DNA of 64,000 nucleotides from Salpingoeca rosetta (Eukaryota; Protista; Choanoflagellata), in the NCBI GenBank assembly GCA_033442325.1, contig JAWQFM010000011.1, forward strand, positions 717,957-781,956, written 5' to 3'. The notes beneath the pieces were generated by a model. That model searched no databases. It had not been told where the DNA came from and worked only from the letters and a program-made list of their open reading frames with translations. Made by a program: the position numbers and the translations under genes. Shown piece by piece: positions 24,016 through 46,453 of this stretch (positions within the stretch are counted from its first letter, which is position 1; every line of letters begins with the position of its first letter).

Positions 24016-33590
<9,575 letters not shown>

Positions 33591-34133: not shown

Positions 34134-37100
34134 ATGGCACACCCTACAAGGTCAGCACACACAACACACACAACACACACACACAACACCACAAGCGCCC
34201 TCCCTTGATCCACCCTTCCCCTCGTACGCCTCCTCCCCCCCCCCGCTCGTACCAGCTGCCATCGCTTGGGGTTTCCCGCCACCTCACCCATACGCTTTGC
34301 TCCCTCCACAAACCCGCACTCCGCACACTCCGCACACTCCGCGCACTCCTCGGCTTTGGCTTGCAGCTTCATCCACGAAATTTGCACACAGAACATGCGC
34401 CCGTTCCCCTCCCATTCGTTCTCGATGGCCAGCGAAGGCGGCTTCGTATGCAAGGTATGCATTCGCCCCCCTCCCCTTTTCCCGCCCTGTTTTGGCACCC
34501 ACTCGCGCACCCACCGCTATATTCGGCCGGGCACTTGCTTGCATGCATTTTCGCAGCGATTCCTCTGTGGCCGTGCTTTCGTTCCCTGACTGCTTGTTTT
34601 CACACAATATGCCCTTGTGTATGTGTATGTATGTCTATATGTGTGTATGTATGTGTGCATGTGTGTGTCTGTGTGTATGTATGTGTGCATGTGTGTGTAT
34701 GCATGTGTCTGTGTGTCTGTGTGCACTGTCGTATTCACCGCCACCACCACCAACTGCTGCCACCACCAACTGCTGCCACCACCAACTGCTGCCACCACCA
34801 CCGCCAACTGCCAGTGTGTCTTGTTTGATGAGTTTGAGTTTGTGGGGCACGCGCGCAACAAAAAGGCCGCCAAAGCTGAGGCCTTCTTCAAGGCCTGGAA
34901 AGCCATCACCAACCGCGACCAGTTTGTGCAGGACCTGCCAAAGCCTCCATTTCACATTGTGATTCAGCGCCTCCGCGACGCAGTTGCAGGCGGTCAGCAC
35001 CAGCAACGCCAGCAGCACCAGCGCCCGCAGGGCGAACACGAGGCAGCAGCATCCCATCACCACCTACCCCACGGCCCACAACAGCACCATCCTCAACACC
35101 AACAACAGCAGCACATGCAGCACGACCCGCCTTTGCATCACGGCCACCAGCCTGTTCATCACTACCACCGCCAACAACAACCAGCCCACGAACGATCCGC
35201 GCAGCCATACGCCAGCCATAACAGCAGCAGCACCACCACCACCGGCACTGGCAGCAACAGCAGCAACGTCATAAACCAGGCACTACCCTCTTCTTCCACC
35301 CATTCACACCACTCTGGTGGCTACTTCAACCCAGCAGTGTCGTCAGCGTCAGCATCAGTACCGCCACCAACGTTACCGCAACAACTGACCGTGCCAGTCA
35401 GCTCCCCATCCTCATCCTCGTTCACAACTACCCCGCCCACTGCCCCACCTGCCCCAGCAACCACGCCAGCGTCGGCTGCAACAAGTACGGTCTCAGAACT
35501 GGCCACGCCCTCGCCGCCCAGCGTCCGCCCACCTGTTCCCTTGTCACATGAACCAGGCAGTGTTGCCCATCTCGTGACGCAGACCAACCCCGTATCTGTC
35601 CTCAACCAAACCTGCAGCCAGTTTGCGCTCCCCCTCCCCGTGTTCAGCGCAGACAACAGCGAGGTCACCCTGTATGACGGGTACACGGTGCGCCTCTCCA
35701 TCATCCAGAACAAGAAGACCACCAAGCGCTACACCGCTCTGGTTGCCCTGGAATACCTGCACGAGAAGCTGGGCCTGGGCCTCGTCCCAACCTCCGCATA
35801 CGCATGGGTTGCCACGTCGTACCTGCCCGGCGCCACCTCCGACGCGCGCGCCGCCCTGCCAACAAGCAGCTCCACCTCGGAGACGTGGCCGCGCGTGCCC
35901 ACCAGCACTGCCACATCAGCTGCCACGACCGGCCCCGTCACCAGCATGGCCAGCAGCGGCAGCACCACCAGCGCCTTCTCTGGCAGCGCCTTTACGGGCA
36001 GCACCTACAGCATGGGCATGGCCCCACAGCCGTTTGTGTCTGCTGCCTGCGGGTCCTTCCGCAACCCGGACGTGTACGACGTCACCGCAGACTCTGCGCA
36101 GTTCTCTGTGGCGGTGCAGCCGCTGCAGCCCACCACGCTCGCCAGCGCCAGCGCTGCCGTGGCATCCTGGGCACGCGATGTGCCGGGCTTGCTTGCGCGC
36201 CACCGGTTCTCACGCTTCAACCATGCCACCTACGCCTCCTCCGACAGCAGCTACCTCAACGCCATCCTCACCTCTATCAAGAGCGACAACTTCCTCGTCT
36301 TTGTTGAGTCGTTCTCCATGCGCGTGCATGTGGCCGGCCGGCTTCTCCGCCACCTCATCTCCACGGTTCGTCTGGCTGTGGGGCTGGAGCTGCGTGCTCG
36401 CTGGTCTCGCGTGCGATTGTTTGGGTCGTGGTTGATTGGGCTTTGATTGATCGGGCTCTGCTTGGTTGGTTGGCAAGCTAGTTGGGCAAGTAACTGCTGC
36501 TGTTTTGGTTCTATTGGACAACATCACGTTTGCGTGCCACACGCCCACACCGCATCGCGCGCGCACACACACACACATACACACACATACACACATACTC
36601 ACGCATGCACACACAAATTGTGTGTGTGTGTGTTGTTCTGCCTCCGTCATTGATGCAGGCCGGGCCAGAGCGGATGTACCGCCACCCCACGGATCCCAAA
36701 GACGATGCCACGTCCCATCAACCGTTCTCAAAACGAGCACGATTCCGTTAGTGTGTGCGTGTGTCTGTGTCCGTGTGTCTCTGTGTCTCTGTGTACATGT
36801 CTGTGCATATGTGTGCAATACTGTCAGTTTGCAGCAAATGTTACGTATGTCGACATCAGACCCGCATCTGCACTCATTTTTGCTCACAACGCACACGCAC
36901 ATACGCACAACCCCGAACCCTCCACCACGAAACAACACAAACTATTTTGAAGAATCCATTGGGTGGACTTCCCGGTTCACCTCGGATGATGACCGCAGGG
37001 ACCAGCAACAGACACACGCGCGCATCCCGGAACCCGTTTCAAGCGACCAAGTAGCGCTTTATGTGGTGTCGTCGGAGGCGTATGCACTGAAGGTGGCGAG

Positions 37101-40100
37101 CGTGCTTGGTGCCGTGGAAGGTCTCGGCTGCTGCGTTCCAGACAGCGCCCAGGTGTACGACGCGCAGGTGGATGTCAATGCCTGGCGGCGCCGACTGCAG
37201 CGTGCAGACGTGCTCATCTGCACGCCGACCACGCTCGTGCTGCTGCTCAAGGCACCGCACCTGCTTGCGTTTTGGCCCACGCCGGACCCCACCACAACCA
37301 GCGGCCACGGGGGGCAAGGCGTCGCGATGCCGCATGCACAGGCGCCGCCAGCACCTGCGATGCCAAAACCAATGACCATCCAGGCGCTCATCTTCGACTT
37401 TGATGCGCAGCTGGCAGAGGACCCCCACCTGGGCGAGGTCCTGGACATGTACAGGAAGCCGGACCGAGACAACCCGATTGCCGTGTGTGGCATCACGTCT
37501 GCGCCCTTGCACCCTGGCGCACGCAACCTGTTCTCCAGCTTGGACGACCTGACCGTGCGCACCAACAGCTACCCGCTGCGCGCCTTTGTCGCGCCGCCCA
37601 TGCCGGGCCCGCTCTTCCACGAGCAGCTGTGCAGCTGCGTGCCGTGCACGTACGACGACCGCCCTGCGGCTCTCAACGACCTCTTGCGCAATGCCGTCGG
37701 CGCCGCGGCGGCCGCACACAGCGGCTGGCAGGCCAAGCTGGAGCTGCAGGTGCAACGACTCCGCACGCTGTTCCCGCACGCAGACAGCGCCCACGCCTTG
37801 ATTATCCACCGCCGCTTGCAACGCGCCGCGCTGCGCATTCGCCTGTGCGAGATGATCGAACTTGTGGGCACAGAGTACGGCTTGTTCTGCACCCGCATGT
37901 TGTGGCGCCAAGCAGAGCGCCTTCTCGACGAGTTATCCTGCGATGACGCAGAGGAGCCCCTCTACTCCTCGTTTCTCAGCAGCTTCCACCCGCCTTCCTC
38001 AACCTCCTCAGTAACAACGGCGGCGGCTACAGCAGCAACAGCAGCCTCGCGACAACCCCACCATGGACAACAACAACTCCACCCTGCCCTGCGCAACCAG
38101 GGCAGAAGAGCACCTGCAGTGCAGGACCCGCGGCTGGCCCTGATGAAACGCCTGGGTCGGCAGCAGCAGCAGCAACAGCAACAGCAGCCCAACAGCGTGG
38201 AAGAAGAGGCCAAAGTAGAGGACGAAGGGTCGCTCTGGCCGCCCATCCCCCACTTGTCGTCTTCCGCATCATCTGCAGCAGCAGTACCACCGCATGGCAG
38301 GTCGTTTGATGCGCCAGCAATGACTGCGCCACCAGCAAACGAAGCGCAGCGCACGCAGTGGCTCAACCAGCACTTTCCGTGGCTGGATTCCATGCCACTG
38401 CTGTACGATGACGAGGAGCTGTATGCGCAGCTGTGGTATGCTGACGGCAGCGGCCAGCACGGTGTCATTTCCGAGGACTTTGAGATGGATGAACCCGCGT
38501 CCACGGACACCAAGCCATCGGCAGGCAGCCCCGTTTCCCCCAGGCTGACCGTGGCGCTGAAACTGCTGCAGGCTGCGCGTACCGAGCACACGCGCGTGAC
38601 GCTCGTCCTGCCGAACCAGTTTGGGGTCAACACCATCGCAGCCCTCTTGCAGCAGCGGCTCGCCACCACGGCAACGGCAGCTGAAGAAGACGCCCGCCCC
38701 GCCATCATCGCCGTGCCCACAGCCGCCAGCGCAAGGGTGCTGGTCCACTCCACCGCCGCCGCCGTGGCCACACCCTCCATCGGTGGCCACGGCAGCCGCG
38801 CAGCCCTTGCACCGCCGCTCACACCGCTCACGCGCCGCGTTCACCAGGCCAACCGGTGCTTTGCGGCCATGGCACGCGACGTGGAGCGCAGCGTGAAGAA
38901 GGCGTGGGAGGCCGACGACTTTATCATTGTCACCACCATCGATGCCCTGCCCACGGTGCCGCAGGCCACACTTGTGATCAGCCTCGCCGATGTGACCTCG
39001 GTGGACGCGTATGCAGCGGTTGCTGCGGCGTGTGTGCCCATGGCTGGCGCTGTTGTTCACGTGGTGCCGGACGACGCGCACACGCAGCAGCTCTTCAACA
39101 GCACACGCACCACGTACCTTGAGCTCCGCCACTACTTCAACCTCTTTGCAGGGGTGCCGGCGGAAATGGCCGCTGACGCAGCGTCCACGGGCAAGCCCTC
39201 GTCTTCCAGCACGGCTGATGGCACAGGCGCAGTTGGTGCTTCGTCGACATCACAAGCAGCGTCGTCGTCGTCACCACAGGCAGCGTCGGCAGCAACGGGA
39301 ACCTCGACAACGTTGGCTGTTGCCAACCCCAACCACATTGCCTTGGATGAGCAAGAGTTGACGGGCCTGGAGCAGCTCAACCAGCTGTGTCTGCGCCTTG
39401 ACTTTGGCTCTGGTGCGCGGCGTTCCCAGCTGCCCTTCTACACGGTGCAGGGACACACGTCGAAGCAGTTTGTTGCCGCGGCACACCTTCCACCGGCGCT
39501 GTCCGCCTTTGACAACCAGGACCTTGGGTACGAGCCCACGAATGCCTTGGAGAAGGTAGCCACGCGCTGCGTGCGCGCTCTCGAAGGTCACGGCTACTTT
39601 GACGCCATTGGCACACCGCAGATTGGCCTGAGTGCCCACCACCCCGCTGGGCTGCTGGCATATGCGCGCATGGCAGATGTGGCGCGTGGCCGGCGGGCGC
39701 TGCTCACCAGCCGCTACGACGCCACACGGGACTCGCCGTTCCCATCCACGGTCCTCATCAAGCAGGATGCTTCAGAAGAGTGCAAAGCCTTGGCACCACA
39801 GGCGACGGACAGGGCTGAGGAGCGCTGTGCGCGTGGAATGCCAAGGTGCCTGTCGGCGTCGCCCCACTCGTTTACAGTGGGCGACGGCCACAACGGCAAC
39901 AAATCCAGCACTGCTGGCCAAGCAGACAACGATGCCATGATCAACGGTGGCGATTCCGAGAGCACAGAGGACGCGGTCGTGCTGCACCTGCACAGCTTCC
40001 GAATTCGGCCCGTGGAGAAGTTCAACCGAGACCCGTTGAACAACTTTGACAACTTCCATGCGAACCGCGTGCTGCAATCGCTGGTGTACAGCGGGCCCTT

Positions 40101-42881
40101 GCCGCGGCTTGAGGAGCACGGCTACGAGGCGCTGGCGCCGTCGAGCGACGCTGAGGTCACGCAGGTGCCCGACATGACCGAGTTCACTTGTGGGCTGCTT
40201 GCCCCGCGCCCAATCTTGCGGAAACGCGCCAATCAGCAACCTGGGCGGCAGCACAAGCAGCAGGCCCAGGATGACTTCAGGGTGTTGCTCAACGCCGGCC
40301 TTTGCGGCAGCTTGAGGTACGTGGATCAGGTGGAGGTGTCACCGCAGCAGCTGGCCAAGTTTGCGTCATATCACCGTGAGTGCATGCGCACGGTGGCCCC
40401 TGCCGCCAGCACGGCAGCGCCGTCAGCGGCAACGCCAGCGTACATGTACTGCCCCCTGACCACGCACGGAGAGCAGTCCGTGGTGGCGTGGGGCCAGCTG
40501 CTGTCGAGCAGCAGCAGCAACCCGACATCGCTGCTTGAGGTGTCCATTGAGCACACAACGGGCCGGCTTGTTGCCTTCAAGGACAATGCCAGATCGCCTT
40601 CGTTTATTCTGCTTGGCAAAGACACGACGACGGAAGACGTCGGGGGGAGCCGTCACAAGGGCACGGAAGTTGGTGGCGGTGATGGTGGCGACAGTGAGGA
40701 TGGGAGCAGCCGTGCAGCGAAAGACTTTGCCGTGCTTGTTGTGCGCAGCCAGGACTATATCGCACACCGTGAAGCGGCGCCACGGTTCTCCATTTCGGCG
40801 TCGAAGCTGGTGTTCCTGCCCTACTCGCGAGAGGCGTGCATGTTCCCTGTCTTCGCCAGCAGCCTGGAGTGTGCACTGCTGCACAGGGAGGGCGTGCGCG
40901 TTGTGATGGAGGGGTCCCCACTGCAGTTTTCCGGGTCCGTGTCCCCGTTTGCTTGGAGCCGCCACCACAAGCACCTCAACCCGATTGCCTCCATGCTGAC
41001 GTCGTCCACACTCGGCTGCATTGGTGCAGAGCACCTAGCCATGCTTGGGGATGCGTATCTTCAGTTTGCTGCCGCTGTGCACCTCTACCTCAAGTACCCA
41101 TCGCGTGCTGTTGGCCCGATGTGCGCCCAAATCGCCTGGCTGCGCTCTGATGGATACCTCTCCAAGCGCTCTCAGGAGCTCGGTTTTCCCTTTCTCAAGT
41201 GCGTTTATGGGGGGAGGGGGAGGAGGAGTGACATTTGTTCGTGTGTGTGTGTGTGTGTTTGTGTGTGTGTTGTGTGTCTGTGTGTGTCTGTGTGTTGTGT
41301 GTGTCTGTGTGTGTGTTGTGTGTGTGTGTGTGTTTGTGTGTGTGTGTCTGTGTGTGTGTGTCTGTGTTTGTGTGTCTGTGTTTGTGTGTGTGTGTGTGTG
41401 TAGAGGGGGGTGTCGCGCATCAGTCAATTTGACATGCGTGTCTGTGCTGCTGCTTGTGTTGCTGCTCACACATTGCGTCTACGTGTGTTGGGAGAAGGTA
41501 TTTTGTGCCGTCCGTGCCCAAGTTCGAGGAGTGGGTGCCACCAGGATGGAAGCGGGCGCCTGATGTGGATGCGGTCGCGGCGCGAGCCCTGCTGGTGCGC
41601 GCATGGCTCGGCCTGCTGCATGTGGGCATGGCCAACCCGCACGGCAAAGGCCAGCGCTTTCACAGCAAGCTACACCAGGTGCTGCATGACTTCCTTCATG
41701 GCCTTGGCATTGCTTCTCGTCTCCCAGACAACGTCGGGCCACACGCGGTACGTCACACGTGTGTGTGTTGGCAAATCCATCACAACCAACAGGGCATTGC
41801 GTTGTTGTTGTTGTTGTTTAAGTTGTTGTTTAAGTTGTTGTTTAAGTTGTTGTTGTTGTTTAAGTTGTTGTTGTTGTTGTTGTTGTTTAAGTTGTTGTTG
41901 TTGCTGTTGTTTAAGTTGTTGTTGTTGTTGTTGTTGTTTAAGTTGTTGTTGTTGCTGTTGTTTAAGTTGTTGTTGTTGCTGTTGTTTAAGTTGTTGTTGT
42001 TGTTGTGATGTACAATCGTGGCGCTTTGTGTCTTCCTGCACGCCGCACAATGTGGGGTATAATGAGATGTGCTCTGTGTTTGGTGTGCAGATGCAATACG
42101 ACATGGCGCATCGCCGCTCCCGCGAAAAGATGCAGACCACGGTCCAGCATTACTGGCCAGTGATTGCGCCGCTTGCAGTAAGCTCCCTTGATGGTGTTGG
42201 AACTGCTGCTATTGCCGCCATGCGTGGCACATGTTACCCGCGCAACCAATTGTGCATCAGTTACAGCCTCATAACACCAACCACGCTGCTTGCCTGTTTG
42301 ACATTTTGGGGTTGCAGGAACATCTTGGGTTTACTGGCCCATCGTGCAACCGCGCCCTTCTTCTCGAGGCGCTGACCCACCGCTCTTTCTTGGTTCGTCG
42401 CTGTTGTACTTCGTCTGTCTGTCTGGCTGATTGGTTGGTTGGTTGTGTGTGTGTGTGTGTGGTTGTGTGTGTGTGTGTGTTTGGGTTTGTTTGTTCGCGC
42501 GTATGTGTGTGTTTGTGTGTGCGTGCGTGTGCGCGTGCGTGTGCGCGTGCGTGTGCGCGTGCGTGTGCGTGTGTGTCCTTTTTTTTTCTTTGGCAATCAA
42601 GAGGATTGCGCATGCCCACGTCACCCGCATGACACCAACCATTCTCCACCACACGCTATGCAGAACAACCAGCTCGGCAACAACGAGAAGCTGGCGTTGA
42701 TTGGGCGGCTATGCGTTCGCCTACTGTGCATTGACAAGTTTGTGCAAACCCAGGACAACGCCCCTTCCGTCTCCTCATGGGACGATATCTGGTTGGAAAT
42801 GAACACCTTGCCGTATGCCTGTGTGTGTGTGTGTGTGTGTGTGCGTGCGTGTGTGGTTGGAAATGAACACCTTGCCGTATG

Positions 42882-42915
<34 letters not shown>

Positions 42916-44586
42916 GGGGATGCTGGTTTACACGCTTTTTGCTTGGACCACACAAGCACACGCGCTTGCATCGCTGAGCCCTCACAAACACACACGCACA
43001 CACTGACTTGATGCCCGCTGTTTGTTTGTGTGCGCAGCGATGAGGTTGTCTCGACAGAGCTGCTGGTGCAGAAGGCGGTGGACATGTTTGGGATGCTGCC
43101 ATACATTCTGCACGACAGCGGAGAGTTTGCGGAGCTGGCTGCTAGCTGCGCACACGCTGTTCGCCACCGCTTGCCCCTGCCGGCCGGCGCAGAGGTTGGT
43201 CATGTGTGCTGCTGCTGTTCCTTGCTCCAAACTTGTTTGTGAGCCATGTTCTGCCTACACCGCTCCTGTCACTCACGCACGCACGCACTCACTCACTCAC
43301 TCACTCACTCACTCACTCACTCACTCACTCACTCACTCACTCACTCACTCACTCACCCACTCACTCACCCACTCACGCACGCTCACTCACTCACTCACGC
43401 ACGCACGCTCACTCACTCACTCACTCACTCACTCACGTATGCACGCACATTTCAATGCAATGCCTGCTTTTGGCAGGAGGTGGCGTCGTTTACGCTGTCG
43501 GTGTTTGGCGCCGTGTTTATGCACTATGGTCTTGATGGGCTTGCTGAGCGATGGAGGTTTGAGGGCTTGCCCACAGTGCAAGAGACTGCGAGCAAGAAAG
43601 CCAACATGGTCGCGGCAGTGCGAGACGCTACGCTCGACACGAAGCTGCACTGCATCTTCCACGCGGAGCCGCGTCCAGACGGGCGGGTGGATGGCGTGTG
43701 CATCCTGATTCACAAGAAGACCCTGCGACGCAGCGAGATTGTGCGCGCAACAGCGGACACGCGCGAGGACGCAATTGTTGCCGCTGCTAGGATGCTCAAC
43801 GCGAACCAAACCTTGCTCTGGTCGACGCTGAGCGAGCTTGGCAAGTACTTGCCGCCGCTGAAGAAGAGGAAGCCAAAAACGGCACCTTCGAGCGTTGGTG
43901 GGCATTACAACTCTGCCGCTGCCAACACCGGAGCAGCAGCCGTCACGGTCATGGATACTCAAGGCGATGGTGACGTGAGTACACCCAATGCAGGTCCGCC
44001 TCAGCGGCGGCAGCAGAGTGATGATGAAGAGAGGAACAGGGGAGGGGAGAGGGAAGTAGGGCAGCCACAACAGCAACAGCAACAACAACAGGTGCAGTCA
44101 CAACAGCAAGATATCGAGATGAAGACAGAGGATGATGATGATGGTGCCTGTTATGACCTTGTGCGAGGGAGCGTGCCCTCGCCACAACCCAGCGGCACCA
44201 CTTCCCAGCCGTTCGCATCGTTTTGGGCTCCCATGTCACCCCTGCCGCCGCAACAGCAGGTTCCGGCCATACCAACAGTGGCACAGTACCAGGAGCACGC
44301 GAGCACGCCGTTTCCCCCTTCTCCGCCACCGCCGCCGCCGCCACCATCAAAGGCACACGAGAGAGCGCAAGAACAAGTGGGGCCGGGTGCCAGCGGCAAT
44401 GGCCGTACTGACGATGCTGACGATGAGGAAGAGGAGGCCATTGCAGAGGACGATCATGATGAACCGCGGCGCACGGCAGGGCAGCAGGTGGTTGGCTCCG
44501 GCCGCACAGACCGCGGTGCCGTTCAGCAGCAGGAACAAGGTGCTGCTGATTCCGAAGAGGAGGCTGTTGCCGACGACGAGAATGAT

Positions 44587-44626
<40 letters not shown>

Positions 44627-44898
44627 CAGAGGTGCGTGAGACTACTATTGGTGAAGATGAGGATGAGGAAGAACCGGTTGCAGATGAGGAGGATGAGGAG
44701 GAGGCAGAGGTAATTGCTGATGCCGGTGATGATGAGAGCCATGTCACCGACACACACACGCAGCCGCCACAACCTGCGGGACAAGAGACCGTTCTGGTTC
44801 AGCAACCCACAGCCATGCCTCCACCACCCTTGACAACCCCGCCAGCTGCTGCCGCTGTAAACACAGAGGACGAAGAAGAGGAAGTTGCAGAAGACTAG
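34134..44898 (+). CDS. Highly divergent Dicer-like protein: dsRBD-dsRBD-degenerate helicase-DUF283-(platform/PAZ?)-RNase IIIa-RNase IIIb-dsRBD?-acidic tail
   Basis: Spliced dsRBD1 HPTSFIHEICTQ..FVCKCVL..GHARNKKAAKAEA; dsRBD2 NPVSVLNQTCSQ..NKKTTKRYTALVAL; helicase DVLICTP, LIFDFDA, VCGITSAP; DUF283 LNQLCLRL..PFY..FVAAAHLP; RIIIa EHLAMLGDAYLQFAAAVHLYLKYP; RIIIb LLLEALTHRSF..NNEKLALIG..SVFGAVFMHYG. Confidence 0.8.
41801..42006 (+). repeat. Intronic (TTG)nTTTAAG minisatellite
   Basis: Direct observation. Confidence 0.9.
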
Positions 44899-45262: not shown

Positions 45263-46453
45263 TCACGCTTTGCAGCATGATGAAGGGAGACAGAACAAGC
45301 AGCCACCCTTCTTGAAGTAACAAACGGCAGCGGCAGCGCCGACAACAAATGCAAGGGGCCCAAGCACGGCGGGGCAGGCAAGTGAGGCAAACAGGCCCTT
45401 GCTGGGCATGGTAACGAAGCTGCTCTTGGAGGCGCCGACAAAGTTTGGCGGCGGCTGCATCTGCGCCTTGTCGCCGTCGGTGAGGGCAAGCCAGCTCTGT
45501 GGTTTGAGAAAGTGGTCATAGAGGTAGCTCTCCTTGCTGCCCGCGGGCGGCTTGTACTCGTAGACCCAGTGCACGGTGGCGGGAAGGGAGACGAGGATGG
45601 ACTCTGCGCGGCCATTGGACATGAGGCCAAACTTGGTGCCGCGATCGTAGGCGAGGTTGAACTCGACGTAGCGGCCGCGGCGGTACAGCTGGAACTCGCG
45701 TTGGGCAATGGTGAAGGAGATGTTGCCGTTGGGCAGGAAGATGGAGTAGAGCTCGTTGAAGGTGCGGCCGAGAGCCATGGTGAAGTTTTTGGCGTGCTCG
45801 AAGCTGTCGCCCTGGAAGTGGTCGTAGAAGATGCCGCCGATGCCGCGCGTCTCATTTCGGTGCGGGAGGAAGAAGTACTTGTCGCACCACTCCTTCCACT
45901 CGCCATAGGGCACGTGGTGGGCGTCGCAGAGCTGCTTGAGGTCGGCGTGGAAGGCGATGGCCTGCTCCAGGATCGGGTAGGTTGGCGTGACATCGATGCC
46001 GCCACCAAACCACCACTTCTCGCCGCAGATGAAGAAGCGCACGTTCATGTGGATGGTGGGCACGTACGGGTTGGAGGGGTGGAAGATGAGGGAGACGCCC
46101 GTGGCGCGGTAGGGCGTGTTCTCCGGGATGTTGAGGGCGCTGGTGGCCGACTTTGGCATGTTGTCGCCGTGGATGCCGGAGAAGTTGCAGGCGCCCTTCT
46201 CGAAGAAGGAGCGAGGGGTGCGCTCCGGGCGCAGCTCCCAGGGGCTGGCGTTGCCGCCTTGCGACTGGAGGTAGTGGCGGCGGTCCACCTCAAGCACGCG
46301 CGTGCGGCCGCCACCCTTGCCTTTCGTGTAGGGCCACTCCGTCTCCTCAAACACTTGTCCAGAGAAGGATGACAGAAACGAGGTGATGTGGTCTTGCACA
46401 GCACGGAACTCCTGCTCCAGTGCATCCACTTGCTGCATCGATGGCGTCGTCAT
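45263..46453 (-). CDS. hemF: Oxygen-dependent coproporphyrinogen III oxidase, intronless, with a C-terminal hydrophobic tail
   Basis: GGGRTRVL, FEKGACNFS, ATGVSLIFHPSNPYVPTIHMNVRFF, WWFGGG, WCDKYFFLPHRNETRGIGGIFYD, RRGRYVEFNLAYDRGTKFGL. Confidence 0.97.
   Translation of the reverse strand: MTTPSMQQVDALEQEFRAVQDHITSFLSSFSGQVFEETEWPYTKGKGGGRTRVLEVDRRHYLQSQGGNASPWELRPERTPRSFFEKGACNFSGIHGDNMPKSATSALNIPENTPYRATGVSLIFHPSNPYVPTIHMNVRFFICGEKWWFGGGIDVTPTYPILEQAIAFHADLKQLCDAHHVPYGEWKEWCDKYFFLPHRNETRGIGGIFYDHFQGDSFEHAKNFTMALGRTFNELYSIFLPNGNISFTIAQREFQLYRRGRYVEFNLAYDRGTKFGLMSNGRAESILVSLPATVHWVYEYKPPAGSKESYLYDHFLKPQSWLALTDGDKAQMQPPPNFVGASKSSFVTMPSKGLFASLACPAVLGPLAFVVGAAAAVCYFKKGGCLFCLPSSCCKA

Follow-up and report, generated by a model that had tools for sequence, protein, structure and literature searches.

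The stretch of Salpingoeca rosetta DNA analyzed here (G000:C11:717957-781956; 64,000 nucleotides at its full length, hereafter the window) comes from an intron-rich genome of 55.4 Mb in 68 contigs. On its plus strand it carries a multi-exon Dicer-like gene whose 5' end encodes a pair of double-stranded RNA-binding domains (dsRBDs). Within the gene, dsRBD1 is followed by a first linker, dsRBD2 with an extra helix, a second linker and a helicase-like region. While the original prediction for this locus described the dsRBD pair as a built-in, TRBP/Loquacious-like cofactor, our analysis leads to a somewhat different reading, which we consider probable though well short of secure: the first ~740 codons of this very divergent Dicer-like gene would form an integral tandem-dsRBD module that captures double-stranded RNA (dsRNA) in cis, on a Dicer scaffold whose helicase, of the Dicer/RIG-I type, works independently of ATP.

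Exons and conservation of the tandem dsRBD module

Most of the module lies in a single frame, uninterrupted from 34815 to 36365 (517 codons), which holds the second half of dsRBD1 together with dsRBD2 and the helicase-start block. It is preceded on the plus strand by exon 2 (34367-34454), which encodes helix 1, strand 1 and strand 2 of dsRBD1. The splice sites are canonical (acceptor TTGCAG|C at 34366/34367, donor AAG|GTATGC at 34454/34455 and acceptor GCCAG|TG at 34814/34815) and the phases are compatible, with two bases left over from exon 1 and exon 2 closing on a codon boundary. The putative first coding exon (34134-34150, plus strand) comprises an ATG plus 14 bases (5 2/3 codons). Only a good start context (GCCAAGATGG), a canonical donor (AAG|GTCAGC at 34150/34151) and the P-x-S that it would supply to open helix 1 of dsRBD1 speak for it; read by eye, the resulting junction gives H-P-T-S and then FIHEIC, which parallels the N-P-V-S and then VLNQTC of dsRBD2.

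The remainder of the module can be followed along exon 3. Its start (34815-34985) encodes strand 3 and helix 2 of dsRBD1, with KKAAK at 34860-34874, and a conserved tail (PKPP...VIQRL). By translation, this is followed by a Q/H/S/T/P-rich first linker of ~200 residues and low complexity (34986-35585), the dsRBD2 core (35586-35774, with K-K-T-T-K at 35712-35726), the extra helix (35775-35819), a second linker of ~105 residues that is rich in S, T and A (35820-36134) and the helicase-start block (36135-36365), where the exon closes at the donor ACG|GTTCGT. The original prediction had named the exons 34134-34150, 34367-34454 and 34815 onward with KKAAK, a Q/H/S/P-rich linker, and a second dsRBD in the same exon as the helicase start. 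The canonical splice sites, the translation and the single frame 34815-36365 agree with this, as does the conservation of exons 2 and 3 described below, exon 1 being putative.

To our search of exon 3 with phmmer against 1.84 billion representative proteins there were only two matches, P0001 (1.1e-29) and P0002 (5.9e-13), the former with a cluster mate, P0003, that covers the same stretch. All of these relatives span dsRBD2 and/or the helicase-start block, and P0001 and P0003 span both. They derive from Logan (P0001) and ENA (P0002 and P0003) assemblies. P0001 stems from a third, more AT-rich species. P0002, a helicase-start fragment, is found on 16 ENA contigs, so that this relative is fairly common in environmental assemblies. 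Among JGI metagenome contigs we identified L007 (MDTD01040199.1, 3,453 bases), whose protein product is almost the same as P0003. One strand of L007 carries the two exons of dsRBD1 as well as dsRBD2, the start of the helicase and the helicase exon that follows. Its counterpart of the exon 3 frame (338-1669) is likewise uninterrupted. L007 is the one relative in which dsRBD1 was compared.

Both dsRBD1 exons are conserved in L007. Exon 2 is 59% identical to L007:110-196 and the start of exon 3 is 61% identical to L007:338-508 over 57 residues, with 22 of 31 residues identical in its dsRBD part by hand count. The acceptor and donor of exon 2 and the acceptor of exon 3 have identical codon positions and phase in the two sequences, while the intervening intron (360 bases in the window, 141 in L007) cannot be aligned. 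By the Nei-Gojobori method, the proportion of non-synonymous differences (pN) is 0.25 in both dsRBD1 exons, against proportions of synonymous differences (pS) of 0.93 in exon 2 and 0.70 in the exon 3 start, i.e. saturated; for the latter, the ratio of the corresponding rates (dN/dS) is ~0.15. Because pN is low against a saturated pS, and because the splice positions are kept, this comparison indicates that the dsRBD1 exons are real and under purifying selection.

The same contrast holds for the dsRBDs overall (pN 0.25-0.31 versus pS 0.51-0.93). Linker 2 is near neutral (pN 0.56 versus pS 0.69), and the L007 counterpart of linker 1 is shorter and gives no tblastn match. Identity to L007 is 59-71% for dsRBD1, 51% for dsRBD2, 26% for linker 2, 46% for the helicase start, and 33-34% and 40% for the next two helicase pieces. 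The dsRBDs are the best-kept of the parts compared, since their identity to L007 exceeds that of the helicase pieces. The earlier claim that they are better preserved than the enzymatic sites therefore stands as far as the helicase is concerned (51-71% versus 33-46%), in which the ATP-binding Walker A motif is also dead (see below). Judged from these alignments, the tandem-dsRBD module is older than the divergence between at least three choanoflagellate-like species.

Folds of the two dsRBDs

The two halves of dsRBD1 each point to the same fold. The translation of exon 2 (34368-34454) reads as helix 1-strand 1-strand 2, and that of exon 3 from 34815 as strand 3 followed by helix 2 (..RNKKAAKAEAFFKAWKAI..). 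When profiles of each half were compared with the PDB (177,635 sequences), the single match of exon 2 was residues 12-37 of R2D2 dsRBD1 (E 0.56), and the only matches of the exon 3 start were to strand 3-helix 2 of ADAR2 dsRBD2 (E 1.3), with which dsRBD1 has RNKKxAKA in common. Neither match is significant singly, yet each half selects a dsRBD and the correct half of it. Using hhalign, exon 2 aligns in register with helix 1-strand 1 of dsRBD2 (E 0.021), and the exon 3 start with its helix 2 and tail (E 0.3). The helix 2 motif is of the KKxAK type (KKAAK in the window, KKACK in L007), and the helix 1 Glu is invariant (FIHE). Because its halves match dsRBD halves and are conserved at 59-71%, a dsRBD is by far the best reading of exon 2 plus the exon 3 start, and we infer that the two would join into one fold.

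For dsRBD2, which begins at 35586 (NPVSVLNQ..) and ends at 35774, we built an AlphaFold2 (AF2) model from a three-sequence alignment. The model has an alpha-beta-beta-beta-alpha topology (helix 9-19, three short strands, helix 50-69) with an extra helix at 76-85, and its predicted local distance difference test (pLDDT) scores are 77-90 over residues 10-80, against ~30 in linker 2. A Foldseek search with this model returned weak matches (E 0.07 and above), in a list made up almost wholly of dsRBDs. VIA-align superposed it on dozens of solved dsRBDs at near-complete coverage, with Z-scores of 6-8.7 and root-mean-square deviations (rmsd) of 1.5-2.3 Å. These include Xlrbpa (1di2_B, Z 7.5, rmsd 1.5 Å, 58 of 60 residues), R2D2 dsRBD1 (8kfp, Z 6.9, rmsd 1.5 Å) and R2D2 in 7v6c_B (Z 7.1), TRBP in its Dicer complex (7zpk_C, Z 7.5), Loqs-PD (8yig_B, Z 7.3) and DCL4 dsRBD2 (9k9p_A, Z 8.4). 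The best match was the dsRBD-like domain of DHX29 (Z 8.7), with 82 residues aligned and the extra helix included.

The best match of the dsRBD2 profile in the PDB was an ILF3 dsRBD, aligned end to end and in register at a non-significant E of 1.5. The helix 2 motif, KKTTK in the window, reads KRITK in the relatives, such that K-K/R-x-x-K at the start of helix 2 is kept in both domains and in all species compared. In the extra helix (LGLGxVP....AWV), the L, G, V, P, A, W and V are invariant in three species. To the extent that a confident model can establish it, we regard the dsRBD2 fold as settled. The second dsRBD that had been placed at ~35585-35765 is accordingly found, by model, structural alignment and three-species conservation, at 35586-35774.

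Both dsRBDs are followed by tails (34908-34985 and 35775-35819) that combine proline with a hydrophobic V/I/W-V stretch (PKPPFHIVIQR and VPTSAYAWV), and hhalign pairs the two. The likeness hints that dsRBD1 and dsRBD2 are an old tandem duplicate with a common extension.

The relationship between the two domains bears on their origin, and on the earlier claim of a cofactor fusion. In TRBP and PACT, two N-terminal dsRBDs bind RNA and a third docks on the Hel2i lobe of Dicer, so that the dsRBD-linker-dsRBD layout seen here equals the RNA-binding half of these partners (PMC8138440). A true gene fusion, in which a stand-alone partner of the TRBP/Loquacious/R2D2 type became joined to the 5' end of a Dicer gene, would account for this layout, for R2D2 dsRBD1 being the single PDB match of the exon 2 profile, and for the small number of six-frame dsrm matches in the genome (five, of which two are in a DHX9-like gene). 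However, no specific similarity to such a partner emerged: the sequence matches are divided among R2D2, ADAR2 and ILF3 (E 0.56-1.5), the Z-scores tie TRBP, Loqs, R2D2, DRB4, DCL4, DGCR8, Staufen, DUS2 and DHX29, and the third, docking dsRBD is absent. In addition, the two domains are weakly alike, tails included (hhalign as above; tblastn E 0.08), and an internal duplication fits this equally well. We consider a fusion improbable, and the original prediction is not supported in this respect; "built-in cofactor" is nonetheless a fair functional analogy.

The helicase-like and RNase III regions

The helicase-start block, in which the exon 3 donor falls at the same codon in the window and in L007, looks by eye like the opening segment of a Dicer-type helicase (..DNFLVFVE-S-F-S-M-R..), and its Walker A is degenerate (..DNFLVFVESFSMR..). 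At the G-x-G-K-T position, with the motif placed by reading, the three species have FSMRV, PPLRA and FAQRV, from which Walker A appears dead in all three. Downstream, 36835 is a phase-compatible candidate acceptor, and a GT-AG intron at 36366-36834 would link exon 3 to the main exon (36835-41199, plus strand). The latter lies inside an open frame of 1,645 codons (36466-41403) and would run from the body of the helicase through a long middle part into the first half of RNase IIIa. With tblastn, this frame matches L007 on the same strand and downstream of the L007 exon 3 (E 3e-8 and 9e-27); the dsRBD pair is collinear with the helicase-like region in both species. Between exon 3 and the helicase exon, L007 (1640-2147) seems to have both an extra small exon (~1919-1998) and an acceptor whose phase differs from that of the window candidate.

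The assignment of the downstream region to Dicer draws on leads of two kinds. At 41029-41187 (plus strand) lies an RNase IIIa signature, EHLAMLGDAY, within a sub-threshold match to PF00636 (20.8-22.4 bits against a cut-off of 27). This is the sole RNase III match in a six-frame search of the 55.4 Mb genome, from which genes with small exons could escape, and its best PDB matches are Arabidopsis DCL3 (E 0.06) and Drosha. In the ESM Atlas, a ResIII/DEAD/Dicer_PBD cluster resembles residues 160-560 with a score of 0.95, and for residues 640-1585 the named look-alikes are all Dicer clusters among the matches listed (best 0.89). Neither the putative exons of RNase IIIb nor a dsRBD-like stretch at the C-terminus had a relevant match in a phmmer search of the PDB. 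A word-based protein search with the 1,645-residue frame also came back empty, which carries little weight since low-complexity words had probably swamped it. The Dicer identity of the downstream region is thus a matter of leads, from the sub-threshold RNase III match and language-model look-alikes.

Given this, it may be asked whether the dsRBD pair and the RNase III part belong to the same gene at all. The locus could instead hold two separate genes or transcripts, a small dsRBD protein and then an unrelated downstream gene, as might be argued from an exon 3-to-4 junction (36366-36834) that is modelled only and from the seemingly different small-exon layout of L007 at this point. Against such a division, the helicase-start block shares an exon with both dsRBDs, the following exon supplies the rest of the helicase lobe, with order and strand unchanged between two species, and that exon is one open frame reaching the RNase III match. 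A helicase lobe divided between two genes is implausible, and we hold this explanation to be very unlikely; we infer that the transcript continues from the dsRBDs to the RNase III part.

It is less likely still, to the point that we give it almost no credence, that the gene is a decaying, functionless relic (pseudogene) of a lost RNA interference pathway. The catalytic and ATP-binding motifs do look degenerate, and published surveys report both S. rosetta and M. brevicollis to be without Dicer (PMC3563456, PMC3991619, PMC6040629). A six-frame search of the genome also found no Piwi domain above the cut-off (best 16.1 bits), though genes with small exons could escape it. On the other hand, the open frames (517 and 1,645 codons) and the splice sites are all intact, the latter also being conserved, non-synonymous change is far under a saturated synonymous change, and the same dead Walker A is seen in three species.

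Two further features of the 3' part of the gene may be mentioned. The introns in 41200-43250 contain CA/GT microsatellites, with short peptide-like repeats (e.g. THSL at ~43250-43430), and such intron repeats create long spurious open frames on both strands. The last open frame (43900-44898) ends in a tail of ~330 residues that is very acidic and Q/P-rich, with runs of E/D and Q.

A predicted dsRNA capture module and its relation to known systems

In the reading that we favor, the two dsRBDs would capture dsRNA and position it for the body of the protein in cis, a job that is done in trans for canonical Dicers by TRBP, PACT, Loquacious, R2D2 and the plant DRB proteins. The covalent tether would take over from a third dsRBD docked on the helicase lobe Hel2i. 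Since, on the motif reading given above, the usual mode of ATP binding is closed to the helicase, substrate engagement may depend mainly on the dsRBDs.

Several observations weigh against this reading. At the level of the domains, the loop of dsRBD1 lacks the canonical G-P-x-H His and has EGGF or YGGF instead, while dsRBD2 has neither the helix 1 Glu (Q or T in its place) nor the loop 2 His (its loop being a short DNSE), as far as can be read from the alignment. The missing G-P-x-H in both domains and the missing Glu in dsRBD2 may denote a low affinity for RNA or a role in protein contacts. The AF2 alignment of dsRBD2 is very shallow, as there are only three relatives, and every sequence-level dsRBD match has an E above 0.01. 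The Pfam dsrm model gave no match on exon 2, exon 3 or dsRBD2 alone at E up to 10, and none of the five places found in the six-frame PF00035 search of the genome is in the Dicer-like gene. At the level of the gene, the exon 3-to-4 junction and exon 1 are both modelled, exon 1 being beyond the reach of comparison because L007 stops 107 bases upstream of exon 2. The gene has no Pfam match to helicase, Dicer_dimer or PAZ domains, the AF2 model of the helicase (from a two-fragment alignment) is unusable at a mean pLDDT of 38.5, and RNase IIIb (..ALLLEALTHRSF.., ..NNEKLALIGRL..) and the C-terminal dsRBD-like stretch are visible by eye only.

Across all exon pieces and sub-pieces, Pfam returned nothing beyond the sub-threshold match to RNase III and one weak match of a dsRBD type, to DND1_DSRM (E 0.013), over helix 1 of dsRBD2. 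We take the failure of the dsrm model as a sign of divergence, namely the short loop 2 and the lack of G-P-x-H. A Pfam scan had been proposed as a check of the dsRBDs; on single exons it came out negative, and in our view the evidence from fold and conservation outweighs it.

These same features raise an alternative in which the dsRBD folds serve mainly as modules for protein contacts or intramolecular docking (type B), keeping the dead helicase in one fixed state or recruiting a partner. Examples of type B domains are TRBP dsRBD3 and DHX9 dsRBD2, which packs on its own helicase. Such a role would fit the altered loops, the absent Glu and the dsrm failure, as well as the invariant hydrophobic extension after dsRBD2 and the best structural match of that domain, since the dsRBD-like domain of DHX29 also precedes a helicase core. 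It sits less well with the conservation of K-K/R-x-x-K, the main phosphate-contact element of RNA-binding dsRBDs, in both domains of all species, with the near identity of RNKKxAKA in dsRBD1 to ADAR2 dsRBD2, and with the long flexible linkers, which suit a search-and-capture role. We consider docking as the main function unlikely, if still the most serious competitor to RNA capture.

Comparison with known systems helps to define what would be distinctive about a capture module in this position. The partners of the TRBP/PACT/Loquacious/R2D2/RDE-4/plant DRB-HYL1 type resemble it in having two dsRBDs and a flexible linker that serve a Dicer helicase, with KKxxK in helix 2. In contrast to these partners, the dsRBD pair here is at the N-terminus of the Dicer-like chain itself, only a poorly conserved linker of ~105 residues, and no third type B dsRBD, separates dsRBD2 from the helicase, neither domain has the loop 2 His, and no specific sequence kinship is detectable.

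Among proteins that carry dsRBDs in the same chain, DrnA and DrnB of Dictyostelium are Dicer-like, with an N-terminal dsRBD in place of, or in addition to, a C-terminal one (PMC5056781), and are similar to the S. rosetta gene in being Dicer-family RNase III proteins of this kind. DrnB has one dsRBD, which is dispensable for microRNA maturation, and no helicase (PMC5056781), whereas here two dsRBDs are followed by a helicase-like region, in a holozoan lineage. Plant DCL1, DCL3 and DCL4 likewise have more than one dsRBD in the Dicer chain, and DCL4 dsRBD2 is among the best structural matches of dsRBD2. The tandem dsRBDs of plant DCL proteins are C-terminal, after RNase IIIb, and the enzymes are catalytically intact; those described here are N-terminal instead. 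In the literature searched, we found no description of a tandem dsRBD pair ahead of a Dicer helicase.

The domain order itself has a parallel in DHX9 (RNA helicase A/MLE), in which dsRBD1, a linker and dsRBD2 precede the helicase (PMC3597700). The likeness of the Dicer-like gene to DHX9 and DHX29 lies in this order and in the structural match of DHX29 to dsRBD2 and its extra helix. DHX9 and DHX29 are DEAH/RHA helicases with HA2-OB modules, are active ATPases and have no RNase III. A core of the DHX9/RHA type was sought in the Dicer-like gene, with no Pfam match to DEAD, Helicase_C or HA2. The genome does contain a DHX9-like gene (G000:C15:767439-773400; L005, L001 and L008) with dsrm, DEAD, Helicase_C and HA2 in a frame of 1,624 codons, and a second weak dsrm match lies 3.3 kb upstream of it. 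That the dsRBD pair might be a recent copy from this gene was considered and rejected, as the two showed no similarity on comparison.

If the assignment is correct, the gene would be a hidden relative of Dicer in a lineage that is sister to animals and genetically tractable, and the arrangement of its domains would amount to a natural "cis" form of the Dicer-partner complex, which would help to part the RNA-binding contribution of the partner from its docking contribution. The work that remains for a Dicer scaffold without ATP hydrolysis, part of its nuclease activity and Argonaute would become visible as well. A more far-reaching proposal, which we regard as speculative and unlikely, is that in choanoflagellates that have lost Argonaute, and with it classical RNA interference, a descendant of Dicer absorbed its dsRNA-binding partner, with its ATPase and at least one nuclease center switched off, and became an Argonaute-independent dsRNA binder or sensor. 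Were this true, its roles might include antiviral sensing or RNA quality control, and the closest relatives of animals would possess a natural intermediate that links Dicer to the RIG-I-like receptors.

On either side of the Dicer-like gene, two features of the window were noted. An intact single-exon open reading frame of 396 codons (45263-46453, minus strand), which looks like a putative coproporphyrinogen III oxidase gene, converges on the 3' end of the gene. Upstream, a run of N (~30830-30930), an assembly gap, lies between a STAND-type gene and the region that precedes the Dicer-like gene.

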